The position numbers were made by a program, and so were the translations under genes. Of a DNA stretch of 64,000 nt, positions 1 to 16,977 are shown in pieces. Each line of letters starts with the position of its first letter. Within the stretch, counting starts at the first letter, position 1. This DNA is from Orbicella franksi. Lineage: Eukaryota. Location: positions 32,860,001-32,924,000 of the forward strand of contig OZ116702.1 in assembly GCA_964199315.1 (NCBI GenBank), in the 5' to 3' direction. The notes under the pieces were generated by a model. It did not search any database and was not told the origin of the DNA. It was given only the letters and a program-made list of their open reading frames with translations.

Positions 1-2682
1 TTACCAGAAGTCTCCAACGACCCATCAGAGGGGGAACTGCGACTGCAGAACGTCTTTGAGGAGCACAGAAAATTGTTTATTTCAGGTAATCAGATTTCCT
101 TTGTAAGCCTCTATGACAATCATGATGCTAAGAGGAAGATTGAAAGAGACATTCAGATCCACGTTCAGCGTCTTCTTGATCAAGGTCTTAATCGCTCTGT
201 GATCGTTGAAATTAGGCACTCGCCTGGTACTGGTGGTACTACAATTGCTCGCCGAGTTATGTGGGATATCCATCAAGCATACCCGTGTGCTTTCATAGAA
301 GTAAGCCCGCATCTCTACTTTGATGAGGACAACAGCTACGTAAGCAAACTAGCTGATCGGATTGCAGCACTTGAAGAGATATGTCACACCTCCCCTGTTG
401 TCTTGATTGACGGAAAGCAATCAGGAGCAATTGAAAGCCTCTCGAACAAACTTGTACGAATGCTTGGCAAAAAAGGAAAACGAGCCCTTTTATTACGATG
501 CCAACACGGATCAAAGACCTCGTCAAGAGAAACTCTGGAGTCATCTCATGTCCACCACGTATTCTACGTAGATGTCAAGCTCGAGGATTCAATAGCTGAT
601 TTGCATGAGTTCGAGTCCAAGTACAGAGAATTCATTGAGAAGTCTTTAGGTGAGGCACCAGTGTCAGACCCATGTCGTGTATTTCACTTCCCACTTCTTG
701 CAATGATGCGAGAGTTTCGTCCCAGGCTTGAGAAGATAATCGATGATACCTGGAATGAGATGGAGAGCCTTCAGCAAGAAATCGCTGTTTTGGTGGCCTT
801 CCTGCAGAAGTATGCAAATCAGAAAACGCCAGCCCTCCTGTTGTACGATGCCTTCAAAGACTACATTCGTCTGGTGGGTGGAAAAAGCGTGGCATACGAG
901 GACATCAAGCAGTTGTTCACAGCACACTTGTTAAACCTAATGGTGCCTTCAAACCGTTTGCGCCGCCGAGGAAGAATGTATTCTTATGACGCCAAAGAAA
1001 CCTCACCTGACAGTTACACGTTGCAGCACCCATTAGTCGCTGAGATGTTACTGAAGAAAGTTTTTCGAGAACAAGATTGTGACCTATTCCGGGTAGTAGG
1101 CCAGTTCCTCCAGTTTCCAATTTACCAACGGGAATGCTTCTTGCCCCTTTTTGAGGAGCTGTTCGTCTACAACAAGGAGGGTCAGAAGAAGCGAAAGTTC
1201 TCGGTACTTTTTGAAGAGCTTAAAGCTATTAACCCAGAGCGTGCTGCCGACGTGTTTTGCACAGCAGCTGAGAAGACCTGTGATCCTCTCATCTTTTCCA
1301 ATGCTGCGAGATTTTTGGCCAAGAAAGAACCTCCCTCATTTTCAAAGGCAAAGGAGCTCATTGAACTGGCCTTTCAAGTTAACACCGACTTGAAAGTGAG
1401 GGGTAGACGCCTTCTCCATACAAAGGGGGTTATTTTGTACATTGAGCTGAAGCACATGGCCAATACCGGCAAAGTTAAAAATTTGGCAAAGCTTGAAGAA
1501 CTGGCCAGCAAAGTACTCAAGGAATACAAAGAGGCTCGCACCTTTCCTCCAACATACCCCAATCCTCTCATTGGTGAGGTCGAAGTTTGGCTCGCATGCA
1601 TCGAATGGATCATGAAGAACATATGCGATCGTGATTCCGAAGAGACAGTGAAGTTCCTAATAAATCAGTCTCCGCCCTTCTTTCGCACATGTATCAGTGA
1701 TTCCTTTACTCTTCTTGACGTTGTTGACAGAATTGTGCATAGTGTGTCAAGCCTGCCAGATCCTGAAGACACACAAAGAAGGTGTAACAATGCCAGATTG
1801 GCTCTGATGAAGACCTGTAGAAGGGCGTCGTCGTCAACCGGACGTAGACGCGAAGGAGAGGATGTTGTTCAAGCGTGCAGGGCACTTTGTGTTGCCACAA
1901 ACTTCCCGCAGTCGTCAGTGTTGGAGCTGAAAAGGCTTCAGGCTCAGTTTATTTTGAGTTCCGGTGATCCAATCGACTTCTTAAAACAAGAACATCTCGA
2001 ATTCTTGCTTAAATTACTGGAAGAACTTGTGCTCATGGAGAAACAGCACAGTCTAGCTTACCATTTAATGAAAGTCTGTGTTTTGGTGACTGGACCACGG
2101 TGTTACAGTCTTGAGCAAGGACTCCTTGTGAGTGAAAAGTGGTTAGAAGTCTCGCCTCATGATTGCCTTCCATATTTTTACCAGATGGCCATTTGTTTTT
2201 TGAAGATCCTTGATGGAAACGCTCTGGAGTTCACCCCAAAGTATCTGAAAGCGTTGAAGATGTGCCGAGAGAAGTCACAGAACCACTGCCGAAGCACACA
2301 GTCTACACTGTTTCTGAGTAATAGAGGGAAAGGGATGTCTCGCCTTGTTACTCGCAACACCTTGTTTCGTGGTGAAAGTGCCTACTCCACCGACGTGCCC
2401 GAAACGGTGACCAGGTTTTGGCTGAAGGATAGTAGAAAAAAGTTGTTAGAGTGTAAGGGAAGAATTCAAGTGCCGCCTTCTTCAGATCGAGGGAAAACAT
2501 ATCCCTACATCGAATCAGTGGAAGGAAATTTGGAGCTCTACGTGGGAAAGAATGCAGACATTGGCAAAGTGGAAAGAGATTTCACTAAGGGACAATTAGT
2601 CTACTTTGTGGTTAGTTTCAACCTTCAGGGGCCTGTTGCAAACGGAATAACCTTTGTACCCCAGAATGGATCAGGTCAGTAG
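1..2682 (+). CDS. SAMD9-like: SAMD9-family STAND-like protein, paralog A (5'-partial; 893 aa visible: end of SIR2-like region, P-loop, TPR, OB fold)
   Basis: Frame 1 is open from base 1 (LPEVSNDPSEGELRLQNVFEEHRKLFISGNQ), so the ORF-track start at 73 is an artefact. SAMD9-like motifs: HSPGTGGTTIARRVMWDIH (human SAMD9 HHPGCGGTTLAMHxLWEL, recalled), PVVLIDG Walker-B strand, NAARFLAKKE / HTKGV / GEVEVWL TPR region, C-terminal VYFVVSFNLQGPVANGI OB-fold end. Colinear with the 13355-16977 exon. Confidence 0.85.
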   Translation, partial: LPEVSNDPSEGELRLQNVFEEHRKLFISGNQISFVSLYDNHDAKRKIERDIQIHVQRLLDQGLNRSVIVEIRHSPGTGGTTIARRVMWDIHQAYPCAFIEVSPHLYFDEDNSYVSKLADRIAALEEICHTSPVVLIDGKQSGAIESLSNKLVRMLGKKGKRALLLRCQHGSKTSSRETLESSHVHHVFYVDVKLEDSIADLHEFESKYREFIEKSLGEAPVSDPCRVFHFPLLAMMREFRPRLEKIIDDTWNEMESLQQEIAVLVAFLQKYANQKTPALLLYDAFKDYIRLVGGKSVAYEDIKQLFTAHLLNLMVPSNRLRRRGRMYSYDAKETSPDSYTLQHPLVAEMLLKKVFREQDCDLFRVVGQFLQFPIYQRECFLPLFEELFVYNKEGQKKRKFSVLFEELKAINPERAADVFCTAAEKTCDPLIFSNAARFLAKKEPPSFSKAKELIELAFQVNTDLKVRGRRLLHTKGVILYIELKHMANTGKVKNLAKLEELASKVLKEYKEARTFPPTYPNPLIGEVEVWLACIEWIMKNICDRDSEETVKFLINQSPPFFRTCISDSFTLLDVVDRIVHSVSSLPDPEDTQRRCNNARLALMKTCRRASSSTGRRREGEDVVQACRALCVATNFPQSSVLELKRLQAQFILSSGDPIDFLKQEHLEFLLKLLEELVLMEKQHSLAYHLMKVCVLVTGPRCYSLEQGLLVSEKWLEVSPHDCLPYFYQMAICFLKILDGNALEFTPKYLKALKMCREKSQNHCRSTQSTLFLSNRGKGMSRLVTRNTLFRGESAYSTDVPETVTRFWLKDSRKKLLECKGRIQVPPSSDRGKTYPYIESVEGNLELYVGKNADIGKVERDFTKGQLVYFVVSFNLQGPVANGITFVPQNGSGQ

Positions 2683-8597: not shown

Positions 8598-11500
8598 ATG
8601 GAAGCCTCAAAGAACCAAACCTCGAACAGAACGGAATTTCAATCGGCAGATGATGGTATTGACACTCAGTTATCACCTGTTACACACCAATCAGAAATAA
8701 CACCAGCTGAAATTGGTCGGGAAAGTGATTCATGTCCTGAATTGACGAGTACGGTTACTTCTTCAGCTGTAAACGTAGCCGAATTTGAGTGTGAAATCAA
8801 CGATGACCCCAAGCAGAATGATCCCAGCGGCAAAAAGAAGAAGAAAAAGAAGAGGAAGAAGAAAACGAACCCAGGATCCTCTGATACTACATCTGACACG
8901 ATCAGTGAAAATGTTCAAGGTGATCATCCTGCAACATCGACGTTGTTGATACAGAAGGCGGAAGTTGACAGAGAAGGTTCTTTCCAAGAATCGACCGGTA
9001 CCGTATCATCACCTTTCCAAGAAGGTGAACGCGAGGACATCCAGGAAGGCACCCTTCCCGGCAAGAAGAAAAAGAAAAAGAAAAAGAAGAAGAAAGCTTC
9101 AGAAACAGGTGATTTTGATGTTATATCCAACTCTCCTTCAAACGACAGGGTTCCCTCACAAGTGCTTTCGTCTGACACTACAGTTCCGGAAGCGGGTGAA
9201 ATCAAAAGTGATGCAACCAAAGATCCTAGGAATCAGGAGTTCACGACTACTGATGAGACCCTCTCAGAGCTGACTTCAGATCAACAAGAGCTGTTGTTGA
9301 CAATCTCAACTACAAGTGGTCAAAATGAAATCGGTTGCCATGACTCAAGCATCACACCAGAGTGTAATGTACAAGGCGATTCCTCTAGGAAGCCCAAGAA
9401 GAAAAAGAAAAGAAAGAAAAATCAAGAGGTAGAGTATAATATTCTGTCAGACGGTGAAAGCGGTGTTGTCCTAGCGACAGGGATAACTGAAATAGAGCGA
9501 GTCAATTTGCTGCAAGTGATGCCTGAAAGAAGTTGTGCAGCAGGAGTTGTGCAACAACAGTCTCAAAACACAAAGGATGCAGAAGCTATAACAGCCCGAG
9601 CGGAAACCCAGATGTTATGTGTCCATGATGTTTCAGCCACTGCAGGCGACATAGTGGAGCTAATTAAACCTGATGAGAAGGATTCATCTACTGGCCAGTC
9701 ACTTCGTGAAGAGTAAGTTTCTTGTCAGTTTTGTTAGGCGTGAAATGGGGGAGGGCATGAGGGTGGGTATTCTGATATCTTGTGAACAGCCATACCGTTC
9801 TTTACTTTGTCTTTAATCCTATACAATGTAGGAAGTTAAATGGTCTAATATAATGGCTGTAAATTATATGAATAATAATACACATGAAAAAATTACTCAA
9901 TTCTGATTGGCTAAGAGCAGTGCACTTCAAGTGTAACACCAGTGCAAAAAGTATAACATCAGTGCAAAAAGTGTAACACCAGTGCAAATTACACATTGAA
10001 ATTCTGGGTTATGATTGACTGAAAGAAAATAGGAAATTTTCTAAGGAAATGATATCACGTAAAATGATGACGAAAATTTTGTGCTGAAACTTCAAAAAAA
10101 GTTTTCTCAAATGAGAAAAAATGACTTCAAGAAAGATCTTCCAGCACTTCCTCCGCGCGAATTTTTTCATGTTCATATTATTAATAAGTAATCATATGGT
10201 TTTTCTCATTCAATTTGGAATTAATTTGCACTTGTGAGTTTTTCAAAAAGCTAAAATTATACTTGCCAAAGCGGTTCGTGCAATTTCAGCTTTTTGAAAA
10301 ACTCACTCATGCAAGTTAATTCCAAATTGAACTCGAAACCGTATGATTACCTATACTAATATGTTTCATACTGACATTTTCTTTGCAATTATTTTACTGC
10401 ATAAAATGTCATTACCCTTCAAATAAGAAGGTTATACCCATGTGGAAGGAGGGAACATTCTTATTCACATGATATTTCATAGATTGTGTAGTTCCAGAAA
10501 ATATCCAGACCTCCCCCACGGAAGAGAATTTTTTCTAACACCCCCCCCCCCCACCCCTCTGGAAATTCCGGTTAAGCTTCATACATTTCTTTAAATTTTT
10601 TGGTCTTCCAGAACCCCCCACCCCCCAGGAACTTTCAATCCCCTCTGTGAGGGGGGTATGGATATTATCTGGAACTGCACATTCACTTACTTGTCAGAGC
10701 TGCTAACAATTTTTCTTGTTATTTGACATCTAATGTTTTCTTGCAATCAGTATCCTATTTTATGACTGTCTGGCAGTAACAATTCAATCAACTGAAATGA
10801 CTTTATTCTTTGTTCTTGCTCTTTCTCTGCTGTCAGTGCTTGAAGATTAACAATATGAAAATCTGTAGAGGATTACCCCACCCTGGGCTCTTTTCATTCA
10901 GAGATGAATCAATCACCCTCTAAGCCATATGATCAACAGAGCAATTGTCCAAACTGATCTGCATACATTACTTGTATATCATATGGACTGTAATGTCATT
11001 TATTAAGGAGGCTGAAATTAAAAACAGTGTTGTTTTTTATTATTATTTGGGGGGAGGGGTGTATAATTTGTTGAGGGAGAAATTGCAAGTCACTAGGCCT
11101 AAAATGATGGAAGGCCTTTTTTAGGAGGGGGGGGGGGGTAATTTGTTTTGATGTGGTAGAAGGGGGAGTGAAATTGGGAGAAAAGAGAACAATGAGGATA
11201 TGGGAGTAGGGGAGATTACCTGCCCCTCTCCCCTCTGTAACTTCAAGAATAATGAAACTTAGGAGGTATACATAGCATGCAAAATTGCTTCCTGCTTTAA
11301 ATGTAACAAATATATGAGATGATGATGTCATATCACTGATAGTTCCTACATTATAATATGCAACAGCTGCCATCTTGGATTTCTTGATTTTCCTCAAAGA
11401 TGATCAAAATAAATAAAATCATGCTGAAAATTATCTTGATGTAGAAATAACAGATGGTAATTTAATTTTGTTAATGAAAACAAAATTTCACATTTGGAAA

Positions 11501-14500
11501 ATCATGCCTCTTTAAAAAATTCTATGGTTGGTATGGAAACATCAAGTTCCGAGCGTAATGGCACGACGTTGTAGCAAATTGTTCCCAGATAAATTTTAGA
11601 TTTAGTGGCAAAGTTTGGCAACTTTTACTCGAATGTTGAAAAAGTTATACTCTTGAAGTCAGAACAGGCAGATCGTTTCTACCCTCCTCAATAGTCTAAC
11701 CAGGGTAAAAGCAATTTTTATGTGTACGCATTGTTTTGGTTTTCTAGGAGAAATATCTTGTGCATTTTCAAGCTTGTTTATGGAGTTGGTCTAAGATCAC
11801 TCCGGAAACTGTTCATTAAAATCAATCCATCATGGTCCAATCAACCCTCTGATGCAGCAGCATTCGACAAATGGAAGATGAAGGTCAGCAAAGATGAAGA
11901 AATTAGTTTCAACAAAGGAGACATTGAGGAATGGGACTTGTCATTGATGACAACGGCACTTCTCTATTCTAAGAGTTGTGCATTGGAAATGAACAAAAGA
12001 CCGGATTTAGCACGTGCCCTGAAGGAATTGAAGATCGACCGTAACAAGCTGCTGGGACACCCTTCTACAGAGAGGATGTCTGATGCTGAGTTTGACACCT
12101 TTTGGCCTCAATTGTCAAAGAACTTTGAAATTCTTGGTGCTGAGCCAGATGACATTGCAGAGATAATGCTCCAGCCAGGTACCCACTGTAAATAAGGTTA
12201 GATAAAGCACTGCGCGCCCATGGGGAAGTTGAAATTCAAGTTCCTCCCCTCGATTGGAAGTATTTTTCTTTTGACTCAACTATGAAGGATCTGGTAAAAA
12301 TCGCCCCTGTTATCCATCTTACTGAGTACGAGCTTTGGACGTTTGACTCGGACTGTAAAACAGGTGATATCGCGCTTTTAGAATTGACTGAGCCTGCACA
12401 GGAACCCATCACTGGGAGCGTGCAACTACCCCATGCATATTCCTGTCACGGCGCTTTCGCAGACCGATCTATTTTTGGTTTAAATTTGCCGCGAATTCAG
12501 ATCTCCGTAGGATCCTCAGTGACCAATCACAAGCACGGACTTAATTTTTCATCATTTCACGTCATCATTTCACTGGAAGATTAAAAAGAAAAACCGCCAT
12601 TTTTTCCCTTACCGATGCGCGTTCATGTATACCGGAACTGACCTATTTCGCGGGTAAAGAAGCCTAAAAATAGACCGGTCGATCTGTAAAAGTGCTGTGA
12701 CGTAGGCTTAGTATGGGGGTTGCACGCTACTAGTGATGGGCTCCTGGCCTGCAGGTTTCCGTCATCGAAGTTGCTGGTTTTAACTTTAAAAGCAGCACTA
12801 CAGTACGTTTGCATATTATGTCAATAATTCTGTCAACTGCTGACGACTTTTTGATTGGACAAAATAAGAATCGGAATACTTTAAGCGTTCCGAAGGAAAT
12901 TTTCGCCCAGAACGGCACTTGTTCCCCTGAATGGGGAATAAAAGTCGGACTGATGTGCTTGTGGGCCGTATAGATTATAACGAAGTCCAATGTAGAAATA
13001 ATCTACTTTGTGTTTTCAAAATCAGATACAGATGATAACTCGAATTTTGGGTGCGTTCCTTTGGGGTGATCTGGATCAGGATCAGTGATCCAAGATCACT
13101 CGGATCATGTTACATCAAAGAAGCCAATGAATCCGTGACAAGAGTGGATTCATCAGTTCCTTTGATACACCATGATCCGAGTGATCTTGGATCACTGACC
13201 CTGATCAGGATCACCCCAAAGGAACGCACCCTTAGAGGGTTACGGTAAATATATGAGTAGAAGACAACAATATCCCTCCCATGCCCCAGGGCTTGAAATC
13301 ATTTCCGAGCTTTTTCTGTACCATATTTTTTAATTGTGGATGTGCTCTCTTTAGATGAAGTGCTCTATTCTGGACATTATTACAAGCAGCTGTTCTTGTC
13401 AGAACGAGAACACGTTTGCGGCAGTGGTGAAAGGAAGCTGGAAGAAATGGATAGCAAATTGGATATCATAATTGCAAATCAGTTACCTGCCACTGTTGTC
13501 AAGGCTCCTATTAGCCCCAGAGACCTCAGTGGTCCCAACTGGGATGAATGGCTGAAATTCTGTGACATGGTCGGGGATTTTGAATCACACCAGAATCAGT
13601 ACATCCTTGTTACAGACTCCCTCCCCCCTGAAGAGCTTGAGTGCTTTTCTATTTTAAGAGGTGTGTCATGGAAGATGATCTTGGACTTCGATCCGATGTC
13701 AGAAGAGGAAGGGTTCTATCGCGAATTCACATCGAAGGAAGGTCAAAGTAACTTGGTCAGCATGATAACACCAGCAGAGTTGCGTAAAAGTTCCATGGGA
13801 AGTCTTCTGCGTCAGATCGATCCACAAAAAACGCAGTGGCTTTTTGTCAACGGAAGGTACAGTGACACGGAGGGAAGTGCACAGTCACTTCCGGATTGGG
13901 AGGCTACCTCAGTCAAGCACATCAGCAGGTTGTTTGGATGTTGTTCTGACCCTGACAAATTTGACAAGCAGAAACCAGTTGTGTGTGTCATCCTTCCATT
14001 TCGCCAGAAGAGCCTGCCGTACTTGGAAGTGACTTTAAGTCGTCTCATCGAGAACTTTGATGAGTTTAAGCTGCGTTTCGTTTCCTTTAAACACAAGCAT
14101 TCCCATCTTATTTCAAGAAAGTTTGAGGTGCGACACTTTGATTTAAGCCCGAAACTTGTCAGTCTAGGGCTGTCAGAAATGCTTACTGCGTCAGCAACGC
14201 CAGAATATCGCATGCCCTCTTCACACGCTAGCGTCCCTGCAAAGCTAAGTCAGAATGACTTTCTTTATCTCAAGGAACACCTTCAAATCCTTTATGACGG
14301 ATGTGAAGATCTCCCAGAATACTCAAATGATCCAGCCGAGTTAGCAAATTTCTTTGAAGAACACAGGAAGTCCTTCATTTCAGGGAATCAAATTTCCCTC
14401 GTAAGCCTATACGACAACCATGATGCAAAAAGAGAAATCGAGGGAGATATTCGAAGCCATGTTCACCGTCTTCTCGATCAAGGATTGACGCGGTCTGTGA

Positions 14501-16977
14501 TTGTCGAGATCAGGCACTCACCGGGAACAGGTGGCTCCACCATCGCGCGCCGTGTCATGTGGGATCTTCACAAGACCTATCCTTGTGCACTTCTGAACAT
14601 ATCTAGTTCTCGCCACTACTTTGATGACGACAATACCCTTTCCAACAAATTTGCCAACCGCATAACAGCATTGGAAGAAATATGCCACACGTCTCCAGTG
14701 ATCCTAATTGACGGAAAGCATTCAAGCTTGATTGAGGGTCTTTCAAACAAGCTTGTAAGGTTGCTAGGCAACAAAGGCAAACGAGCCCTTCTATTGCGCT
14801 GTCAACATGGATCAAAGACCACCAAACGAGTCAATCAGGACTCCTCTTCTCACGTTCATCACGTATTTGATGTCAACGTGAAGCTAGAGGACTCGATTGC
14901 AGATCTCAACGAGTTCCAGTCCAAGTACAAGGAATACATCGCTCAGTCGCTGGGTGAAAATCAAACACCAAACCTCTGCCGTGTTTTTCACTTTCCGCTG
15001 CTTGCCATGATGGAAGAGTTTCGACCCAAGCTCACGAAGATAATCGAGGACACTCTGGATGAAATGGGAGGCATCCAGCAAGAGATGGCGATGGTAGTCG
15101 CGTTCTTGCAGAAATACGCGAATCACCCCACACCTGCTTTCCTTCTGTATGAAGCCTTTAAGGGGTACATCCGCATTTCAGGTGATAAACCCACTACCTA
15201 TGAAGACATCAAGCTGCTGTTCACAGAGCACTTGCTTAACCTGATGGTGCCCACAGACCCGCTTAGACGCAGGGGGAGATCAGGTGCGTTTAAGGACACA
15301 CCACCCGAAAGCTACACTCTTCAGCATCCCTTGGTTGCAGATTTGGTGTTGAAAAAGGTTTTCCAAATTCAGGAATGTAATCTTTTTGGGGTGGTGACCA
15401 AGTTCCTTCAGTTTCCTATCTACCAACATGAATGCTTCTTGCCCCTTTTTGAAGAACTGTTCCTTCACAACAAGTATGGACAGAAAATCAAATTTTCCAT
15501 ACTGTTTGAAGACCTTAAACGCCTTGATCCAGAGCACGCAGCAAGGATTTTCTCTGAGGCAGCTGTGAAGACCAATGATGCCGCTGTATTTGCCAACGCA
15601 GCAAGATTTCTTGCAAAGAAGGAGCCTCCATCGTTTTCAGAGGCAAAAGATCTTATTCAGCGAGCATTCCAAGCCAAAACTTCAAAGGTGAGATGGCGGA
15701 GCCTGTATCACACCAAAGGCGTCGTTCTGTTCCATGAAATGAAGAGCGAGATCCATTCTGGAAAGGTGAAAGATCTGCAAAGGCTTGAAGAGCTGGCCAG
15801 CGAGGTTCTTAAGGCGCACCATGAAGCACGCAATTTTCCTCCAACTTACCCCCATCCTTTGATTGGCGAGGTTGACGTTTGGCTGGCTTGTATTGACTGG
15901 ATCATGAAGAATCGTTGCAATCGTGATTCCGACAAGACCTTGAAGTTTCTTACCAATCGTTCCCCACCTTTCTTTCGCACCTGTGTCAGTGATTCATTCA
16001 ATCTACTTGACATTGTAGATGGAATCTGCCAGAGTGTGCCTAACCTTACAGATCCCGATGAAACCCAGAGGCTTAGCAACACTGCCCGATTGTCTCTGCT
16101 GAAGACCTTTAAACAAGGGCTTTCAGTAACTGGACGAAGACGTGATGCAGATGATTTACTTCAAGCCTGTAAGGCAATTTGCAGTGCTCCAAACTTTCCA
16201 AGATCTTCGCAAGTGGAGCTCAAGAAACTCCAGGCTCACTTCATCCTGAGTGCAAGTGATCCAATCGACATATTAAACCATGAAAACCTTGAGTATTTAC
16301 TGAAGCTCCTGGAAGAACTGGTGTTGGGTGAGAATGAATACAGGCTGGCGTACCATCTGATGAAGGTGTGCGTGCTGGTGACTGGCCCAAGATGCTACAG
16401 TCTCGAGCAAGGTCTTACTGTGAGTGAGAAGTGGCGTGATGTTTCTTCTAACGACTGCCTCCCTTATTTCTACCAGATGACCATCTACTTCTTGAAGATC
16501 CTTGACGGAAACTCGCTCGAATTCGCGTCGAAGTACACCAAAGCATTGAGAATGTGTCAAGAAAAATCTCAGAATCATTTTCGCAGTACGCAATCAACGT
16601 TGTTTGTGGGCAAAGGTGGACAAGGGATGTCCCGTCTCATTACCCGCAACACCCTGTTCCGAGGGGAAACTGACTACGCCACAGATGATTCCGATAAAGT
16701 GTCAAAGTTCTGGCGAGTTGACAGTCGTAAAAAGTTGCTGGAATGCAAGGGACGGATACGAGTGTCCGAGCAGTCTTTCTCGCGTAGGAAGATCCATCCC
16801 TACATTGAACTTGTGCAAGGAAATCTGCAGCTCTATGTTGGGAAAAATGCAAACATTGGCAAAGTAGAAAGGGACTTTCCCGCTGGAGCTTTGGTATATT
16901 TCGTCGTGAGTTTCAACCTCCATGGCCCTGTTGCCAATGGAATAACCTTCTCGCCTCAAGAACTAACTCATGGCTAA
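8598..16977 (+). CDS. SAMD9-like: SAMD9-family protein, paralog B, 1722 aa: poly-Lys IDR - HEPN (DZIP3-type) - SIR2-like - STAND-like P-loop - TPR - OB fold
   Basis: Exons 8598-9712, 11748-12178, 13355-16977. Junctions GA|gtaagt...tttctag|G (phase 2) and G|gtaccc...ctctttag|AT (phase 1) join in frame; total 5169 nt = 1723 codons. SAMD9 hallmarks: QYILVTD, WKMILDFDP, WLFVNGR (recalled human YILVTN, WFAVLEFDP, WIFCNGR), HSPGTGGST, PVILIDG, VYFVVSFNLHGPVANGI. An acceptor at 8534-8535 with an in-frame stop before the ATG indicates a non-coding upstream exon. Confidence 0.85.
9872..10340. mobile_element. Interspersed repeat in intron 1 of paralog B with short tandem repeats and a long terminal hairpin
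   Basis: Three GTGTAACACCAGTGCAAA-like units at about 9930-9990. About 70-bp imperfect inverted arms across about 10185-10335. Confidence 0.7.
10483..10683. mobile_element. MITE (family also present at 55449-55631)
   Basis: TIRs ATTGTGTAGTTCCAGAAAATATCCAGACC / GGTATGGATATTATCTGGAACTGCACATT. The internal TTCATACATTTCTTTAAA core is shared with the HPRT intron 2 copy. Confidence 0.85.
11748..12178 (+). other. Exon 2 of paralog B encoding a complete DZIP3-type HEPN domain
   Basis: Translation contains WDLSLMTTALL, then ALKELKIDRNKLLGH (R at 12040-12042, H at 12058-12060), then MSDAEFDTFWPQLSKNFEILG. This matches the DxxLL / RNx4H / SDxEFxxxW...LG pattern of HEPN_DZIP3 as recognised by eye. Confidence 0.75.
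13049..13231. mobile_element. Palindromic Harbinger-type MITE in intron 2 of paralog B
   Basis: About 60-bp near-perfect inverted arms GGGTGCGTTCCTTTGGGGTGATC...CGGATCATG / CATGATCCG...GATCACCCCAAAGGAACGCACCC. Flanked by TTT and TTA (TWA-like target). Confidence 0.9.

Follow-up and report, generated by a model that had tools for sequence, protein, structure and literature searches.

We describe here a gene of the stony coral Orbicella franksi, found in a 64,000-nt stretch of contig OZ116702.1 (assembly GCA_964199315.1, positions 32,860,001 to 32,924,000 of the forward strand; hereafter the window), whose predicted product joins a DZIP3-type HEPN domain to a body of the SAMD9 type. An earlier note, made from the sequence alone, had proposed that three open reading frames (ORFs) at this locus splice in frame at GT-AG sites into a single protein, and this proposal is borne out. 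Joining the three coding exons (Table 1) yields a plus-strand coding sequence of 5169 nt with only one stop codon, the terminal one, and a protein of 1722 amino acids; both introns have GT donors, their AG acceptors lie behind polypyrimidine tracts, and the window contains no runs of N. Two RefSeq models of 1717 amino acids each, XP_068740739.1 from Montipora capricornis and XP_068693710.1 from M. foliosa, can be aligned with residues 1-1722 of the spliced product. The identity is 90% overall and, taken exon by exon, 80%, 92% and 95%, and a single ungapped block crosses both junctions. Both fall in the 90%-identity cluster of the closest database relative (P0001), which is 96% identical to exon 3. 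In tblastn searches the match to exon 2 lies directly ahead of the match to exon 3 in 16 of 16 long homologues. Moreover, a homologue of 1580 amino acids (P0032, 64% identical) is encoded without introns on contigs of ~5.8 kb from three sequencing runs (L001-L003), and the alignment of these transcripts to the window is interrupted at 11747/8 and at 12178, just where exon 2 is predicted to begin and end. The nearest database contigs (L004-L007, 88-94% nucleotide identity) are genomic, with introns at the same places, and therefore offer no transcript evidence. We conclude that the locus is a real, intact stony-coral gene with three coding exons.

It is very nearly certain that the encoded protein consists, in order, of a disordered N-terminus with poly-Lys tracts, a HEPN domain, a linker, a SIR2-like domain, a STAND nucleoside triphosphatase (NTPase), a TPR-like region and an OB-like domain. 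The segment of ~370 residues encoded by exon 1 is acidic and rich in Ser, Thr, Glu and Lys, has a hydrophobic fraction of 0.18 (0.34 in the folded parts) and contains no Pfam domain. The N-termini of homologues are similar in character and terminate in ...(R/K)EE immediately ahead of the HEPN domain. Poly-Lys tracts are present in the N-termini of all long coral and sea-anemone homologues, which are otherwise unalignable; BLAST finds no similarity between exon 1 and the N-termini of more distant homologues, with which only composition and poly-Lys character are common. These tracts may serve in nuclear or nucleolar targeting or as an RNA tether, or may act as A-rich runs that slow the ribosome. 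We also note that some 280 bp of intron 2 (12746-13022) are 71% identical to positions 63-329 of contig L004, which belong to the corresponding intron of a 94%-identical relative, with unalignable flanking sequence; a repeat common to both introns, or an element conserved within them, could account for this stretch.

Table 1. Features of the locus, in positions of the window
Feature	Position	Strand	Remarks
Tandem paralogue, 3' part of another SAMD9-like gene	1-2682	+	NTPase to C-terminus; cut by the window edge
ORF, 372 aa	8598-9716	+	open reading frame listing
ORF, 157 aa	11722-12195	+	open reading frame listing
ORF, 1213 aa	13336-16977	+	open reading frame listing
Coding exon 1	8598-9712	+	residues 1-371 plus two bases of codon 372
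Poly-Lys tracts in exon 1	8832-8864, 9063-9095, 9396-9419	+	8-11 residues; AAG/AAA runs
Intron 1	9713-11747	+	GA/gtaagt ... ttttctag/
Coding exon 2, DZIP3-type HEPN	11748-12178	+	residues 373-515 of the 1722-aa protein
Predicted HEPN catalytic motif RNKLLGH	12040-12060	+	R470 ... H476 of the full protein
Intron 2	12179-13354	+	AG/gtaccc ... ctctctttag/
Coding exon 3, including stop	13355-16977	+	linker, then the entire SAMD9-like body
SIR2-like alpha/beta domain, probably inactive sirtuin-like	13543-14376	+	exon-3 residues ~63-340
STAND-type P-loop NTPase	14377-14991	+	Walker A HSPGTGGST 14515-14541; Walker-B-like VILIDGK 14698-14718
Long helical TPR-like region	14992-16581	+	helical in the AF2 model; HMM stretch; structural matches
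C-terminal beta-rich domain, position of the SAMD9 OB fold	16582-16956	+	AF2 beta strands; structural alignment

A SAMD9-like body and a HEPN domain

The body encoded by exon 3 resembles SAMD9 in both sequence and predicted structure. A single-sequence search of PDB sequences returned only SAMD9 chains (E=2e-12, exon-3 residues 76-414), and a profile built from 21 family members matches SAMD9 at E=4.9e-31 in three collinear stretches, which cover the SIR2-like domain with the P-loop, part of the TPR region and, weakly, the C-terminus. An AlphaFold (AF2) model of exon-3 residues 61-1206, with a mean predicted local distance difference test score (pLDDT) of 81.7, passes through an alpha/beta, a second alpha/beta, a long helical and a C-terminal beta segment, in that order. 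In Foldseek this model matches cryo-electron microscopy structures of human SAMD9 best (9zjr, E=9e-36), next the SIR2-STAND protein Avs5/AVAST5 (E about 1e-9 to 1e-7), and then Avs3/4 and CED-4/Apaf-1. We thus find the collinear SIR2-like, STAND P-loop, TPR and C-terminal OB parts that make up the core of the SAMD9 family in the definition of Mekhedov et al. (2017).

Within this body the NTPase matches nSTAND_NTPase5 (PF25199) at E=8e-4, below the cut-off. Its Walker A motif aligns with HHPGCGGTT of SAMD9, with Gly replacing the canonical Lys, and H387, P389, G390, G392, G393 and T395 are invariant among 21 sequences (pattern H-x-P-G-x-G-G-x-T); a Lys-less GGT/S Walker A motif with an upstream His is the distinguishing mark given for SAMD9-family proteins by Mekhedov et al. 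(PMC5445408). The second stretch of the hidden Markov model (HMM) comparison (profile 664-834) matches the TPR part of SAMD9, and residues 615-1013 of the model match the TPR proteins LGN, Ski3, OGT and SPY. In the OB region, beta strands are predicted at model residues 1022-1137, the structural alignment extends to the last residue of SAMD9, 1589, and a collinear HMM stretch (1062-1201) is individually non-significant. The SIR2-like domain contains no conserved His, and no match to Pfam SIR2 or iSirtuin was found in the exons; going by this lack of conservation, the domain is probably catalytically inactive, as is assumed for SAMD9. On the same grounds we rejected the SIR2-like domain as the true effector, that is, as an NADase.

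The domain encoded by exon 2 is assigned to HEPN_DZIP3 (PF18738) on the strength of matches across its clade. The copy in the window matches PF18738 at E=3e-5 with 24.2 bits, under the 27-bit gathering score and only over profile positions 80-131; 15 of 15 clade segments match at E<=0.01 (best 1.4e-8), and an Exaiptasia member (P0103) exceeds the cut-off with 31.1 bits. The AF2 model of the domain, built from an alignment of 51 sequences, is all-helical, as expected of the all-alpha HEPN fold, and has a pLDDT of 94.4. HEPN domains take the first four places among its structural neighbours, and within Swiss-Prot it comes closest to the HEPN regions of DZIP3 from mouse and human, at a template modelling (TM) score of 0.48 and a weak E-value. 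Against the PDB, Foldseek of the model was uninformative and the HEPN-clade profile gave zero sequence matches at E<=10. An exhaustive search with exon 2 across 1.84 billion representatives returned only 60 clusters, pointing to a narrow HEPN subfamily, and with its weakest matches it reaches canonical DZIP3-like HEPNs, which are joined to TPR/Sel1/MYND or NACHT-like chassis. The predicted catalytic motif is intact and conforms to the HEPN signature R-x4-6-H, usually R-N-x3-4-H, with the spacing R-x5-H in the SAMD9-like clade as against R-x4-H in canonical DZIP3-like members. Across the alignment the His is found in 51 of 51 sequences and the Asn in 48, and the first position is basic throughout (Arg in 36, Lys in 15): stony-coral members have Arg, and Lys is found in every SAMD9-like member from sea anemones and jellyfish. 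The members inspected at this position include P0103, P0108, P0102, P0113, P0148, P0149 and P0152 (HEPN alignments A1 and A3).

The HEPN domain is located where bilaterian SAMD9 has its AlbA_2 domain. In SAMD9, AlbA_2 lies at residues 195-352 by HHpred (PMC5445408 supplementary table 1), and the HEPN domain fills this slot because the structural alignment of the body model begins at SAMD9 residue 389, just after AlbA_2; the distance from the end of HEPN to the start of the body profile is 0-6 residues in 28 of 31 homologues. AlbA_2 and the N-terminal SAM domain, both features of the SAMD9 family, are absent from the three exons (Pfam, E<=1) and from five long homologues, N-termini included (Pfam, E<=0.01). 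The ten ORFs of the introns and of the 2.7-8.6 kb region upstream contain neither domain, nor any other Pfam domain at E<=1, and on this result we rejected a hidden AlbA_2 or SAM exon near the gene. AlbA_2 has been inferred to belong to the ancestral core of the family and to have been lost in some members, and SAM is absent from many (PMC5445408); members that carry AlbA_2 occur in oyster, Lingula, Saccoglossus and vertebrates (PMC5445408 supplementary data). We infer that HEPN replaced AlbA_2 in evolution. The picture drawn in the earlier note, of SAMD9-family SIR2-like, P-loop, TPR and OB parts in exon 3 and of a DZIP3-type HEPN domain with RNKLLGH in exon 2 that stands in place of AlbA_2, no SAM or AlbA_2 being recognisable, therefore holds in each of these parts.

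Distribution, selection and paralogues

The HEPN-SAMD9 architecture is a fixed feature of this clade, from stony corals and sea anemones to a scyphozoan. In a survey of cnidarian homologues, a step that the earlier note had suggested, HEPN adjoins the body in 31 of the 31 with a visible N-terminus, and the bearers span Scleractinia, Actiniaria and the scyphozoan Sanderia malayensis. The ratio of nonsynonymous to synonymous substitution (dN/dS), computed against two ~88%-identical genomic relatives at a synonymous divergence (dS) of about 0.5, is lowest in the body (0.085) and reaches 0.20-0.22 in HEPN and 0.27-0.29 in the linker, values which indicate that all parts of the protein are under purifying selection. 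Anthozoan members of the family form more than 120 clusters at 90% identity, and the left edge of the window itself holds a tandem paralogue (Table 1), which is 70% identical to exon-3 residues 347-1208 over 866 amino acids (BLASTP). By region the paralogue is 73% identical in the NTPase, 69% in the TPR-like region, which is marginally the most divergent, and 73% in the OB region; synonymous sites between the two tandem copies are saturated, so that dN/dS could not be computed. Any HEPN exon of the paralogue would lie beyond the edge of the window. A tandem paralogue together with the anthozoan expansion is what one sees in immune gene families that have expanded within a lineage.

We note that other cnidarian members of the SAMD9 family in the 2017 dataset carry different N-termini (PMC5445408 supplementary files 1 and 3). 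An Acropora digitifera protein consists of a repeat region, a glycosyltransferase, and SIR2-like, STAND and TPR parts, and several further cnidarian members start, as judged by eye, with Death-effector-like sequences (PMC5445408 supplementary files). There are thus at least two SAMD9-family architectures in cnidarians.

A possible RNase effector and its alternatives

The AlbA_2 domain of SAMD9 is described as a tRNA-Phe anticodon nuclease (PMC10246899), and in SAMD9L the Sir2-like and OB domains mediate dimerisation, for which neither SAM nor AlbA is needed (bioRxiv 10.64898/2026.02.01.703102). PDB entries for SAMD9 dimers and for Avs5 filaments are among the structural matches that we obtained. 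HEPN RNases act as dimers, two protomers being needed for the composite active site. Given this nuclease, these assemblies and this dimer site, the most likely working model would be an autoinhibited STAND sensor with a HEPN effector. In the absence of a trigger, which would probably be a nucleic acid or protein of a virus, the body would keep the molecule shut with nucleotide in place. Opening and di- or oligomerisation would then unite two HEPN domains into a composite, metal-independent RNase site, which would cut tRNA, rRNA or mRNA of the cell and/or of the virus and so bring protein synthesis in infected cells to a stop. Analogy with these systems makes the chain from ligand sensing through oligomerisation, HEPN dimerisation and RNA cleavage to translation shut-off plausible, and it suggests that the protein may cut RNA, be switched on by oligomerising and serve in immunity. 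We regard the case for the RNase-effector mechanism itself as evenly poised, and we lean slightly towards the gene architecture together with this mechanism as the best explanation of the locus as a whole.

Weighing against a catalytic effector are the replacement of the catalytic Arg by Lys in sea-anemone and jellyfish members, which accounts for 15 of 51 sequences, and the fact that the literature covered cites no activity, RNase activity included, for DZIP3-type HEPNs. It is these points that keep alive the main rival explanation, an unlikely one in our judgement, in which the HEPN domain is non-catalytic here and instead has an RNA-binding or sensing function, or acts as a homotypic adaptor to other HEPN_DZIP3 proteins, for example anthozoan HEPN-NACHT NLRs. 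As an adaptor it would parallel the Death, CARD and Pyrin N-termini of other invertebrate and fish SAMD9 members. Human DZIP3 is an RNA-binding E3 ligase, which counts in favour of such a role. So do the Death-fold adaptors found at the N-terminus of other SAMD9-family members (PMC5445408), the position of HEPN_DZIP3 as the commonest NACHT partner in anthozoans (PMC8260672) and the description of HEPN_DZIP3 as 'RNA-binding' (PMC10236652). Nevertheless, a His kept in every sequence, a near-invariant Asn and a first position that is always basic make up the pattern of a catalytic site and exceed what a scaffold needs. In addition, the catalytic residues of the DZIP3 family have been called 'mostly conserved' (Anantharaman et al., PMC3710099), and the domain stands in the position of a proven nuclease.

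A housekeeping or RNA-processing role, such as nucleolar or ribosome-associated RNA surveillance with the poly-Lys tracts as nuclear or nucleolar targeting signals or as an RNA tether, would sit well with the retention of these tracts as a feature of all homologous N-termini, with the strong purifying selection on the body (dN/dS 0.085) and with the eukaryotic HEPN proteins Las1 and Swt1, which are RNA-processing factors (PMC3710099). We consider such a role improbable, however, in view of the tandem duplication and large lineage-specific expansion of the family and of the characterised relatives of the body (SAMD9/9L, Avs5 and Avs9), all of which are defence proteins. It is more improbable still that an error in the gene model has produced the fusion, with the HEPN and/or the Lys-rich exon on a separate transcript, or that the locus is a pseudogene. 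The transcript support does come from a homologue (P0032) and not from the same genome, and ORFs of exon 3 alone (about 1200-1230 amino acids) are frequent in databases, though they stem from genomic contigs on which ORFs had been called. Against an artefact stand the end-to-end match to the RefSeq models of two Montipora species, the spliced transcripts of the homologue, the presence of the fusion in every one of the 31 informative homologues, and three open frames with dN/dS below 0.3.

Significance and relation to known systems

In humans, SAMD9 and SAMD9L act as restriction factors of poxviruses and lentiviruses, and their overactivity leads to severe disease; tRNA cleavage by AlbA_2 has been established as their output only recently. 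A cnidarian-wide clade that retains the whole sensor body and carries another predicted RNase in the same slot amounts to a natural experiment on how this chassis acts, that is, on autoinhibition of an effector followed by activation through proximity. The clade supports the view of the SAMD9 chassis as a modular STAND receptor, like bacterial Avs, and connects SAMD9-type receptors with the large uncharacterised repertoire of HEPN_DZIP3 receptors in corals, whose immune biology bears on reef disease. It is possible, and we put this forward tentatively, that the cnidarian SAMD9-like proteins are pathogen-activated HEPN ribonucleases and that the chassis has gained two unrelated RNases at the same position, AlbA_2 in bilaterians and a DZIP3-type HEPN in cnidarians. 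If so, selection on the output of this sensor would have been for RNA cleavage and translation shut-off ever since a time before cnidarians and bilaterians diverged, and the DZIP3-type HEPN would be a plug-in RNase effector common to coral SAMD9-like and NACHT/NB-ARC receptors. The importance of the finding is limited in that the architecture is already present in public annotation and modular swapping of effectors is an accepted principle in this superfamily.

The earlier note had left it open whether this fusion had been described before. On the one hand, we found no paper that describes a SAMD9-HEPN fusion in the searchable literature, which did not include subscription journals. On the other hand, the domain has been annotated automatically: RefSeq and UniProt hold such proteins, and some UniRef entries are auto-named 'DZIP3-like HEPN domain-containing protein'. 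The sea-anemone proteins KXJ11435.1 and KXJ09690.1, whose N-termini are identical to those of P0108 and P0103, respectively, were part of the 2017 SAMD9 dataset, in which only AAA, TPR and OB were recorded for KXJ11435.1 and its HEPN domain went unnoticed. The premise of the same note that Avs-type STAND proteins swap their N-terminal effectors is already in print for the SAMD9/Avs family (PMC5445408, PMC12680541). N-termini of the SAMD9 family vary among SAM, Death/CARD/Pyrin/FIIND and kinase domains, with loss of AlbA_2 or Sir2 in places (PMC5445408), and HEPN_DZIP3 is fused to NACHT, TPR, Death and other domains and is expanded in Nematostella and corals (PMC3710099, PMC8260672, PMC10236652). 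The advance reported here is thus a specific, well-supported example that fits the known modularity of the receptor superfamily and not a new concept.

Compared with vertebrate and other bilaterian SAMD9 and SAMD9L (9zjr, 9zjs, 9zjv, 37id), the coral body is only about 15% identical. Where SAMD9/9L have an AlbA_2 (Schlafen-like) tRNase, the coral protein has an all-alpha DZIP3-type HEPN domain with R-x5-H, and where they have a SAM domain it has the ~370-residue disordered N-terminus with poly-Lys tracts. The SAMD9-like antiphage STAND proteins of bacteria, Avs5/AVAST5 (SIR2-STAND), Avs6 and Avs9, are much farther from the coral protein than SAMD9 is and carry SIR2, PNP and AlbA_2 effectors, respectively (PMC12680541), whereas the candidate effector of the coral protein is HEPN; we found no HEPN-bearing member of the SAMD9-like Avs clades described in the literature. 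Nor is the coral protein an Avs in the bacterial sense, a term for STAND proteins of prokaryotic defence islands that couple an effector at the N-terminus to a C-terminal sensor of phage proteins. RNase L, the KEN domain of Ire1, Csm6/Csx1 and PrrC/RloC, which are HEPN RNase effectors activated by dimerisation or oligomerisation, are related to it in sequence only at the superfamily level, and its own RNase activity is a prediction. The coral protein can also be compared with the anthozoan HEPN_DZIP3-NACHT NLR-like receptors and with DZIP3/hRUL138, which likewise carry PF18738 N-terminal to a STAND NTPase with repeats (PMC8260672, PMC10236652, PMC3710099). Unlike these receptors, it combines its HEPN domain with an NTPase of the SAMD9 type (nSTAND5/7, with a Lys-less Walker A motif) and with SIR2-like and OB parts, and not with a NACHT or NB-ARC module.

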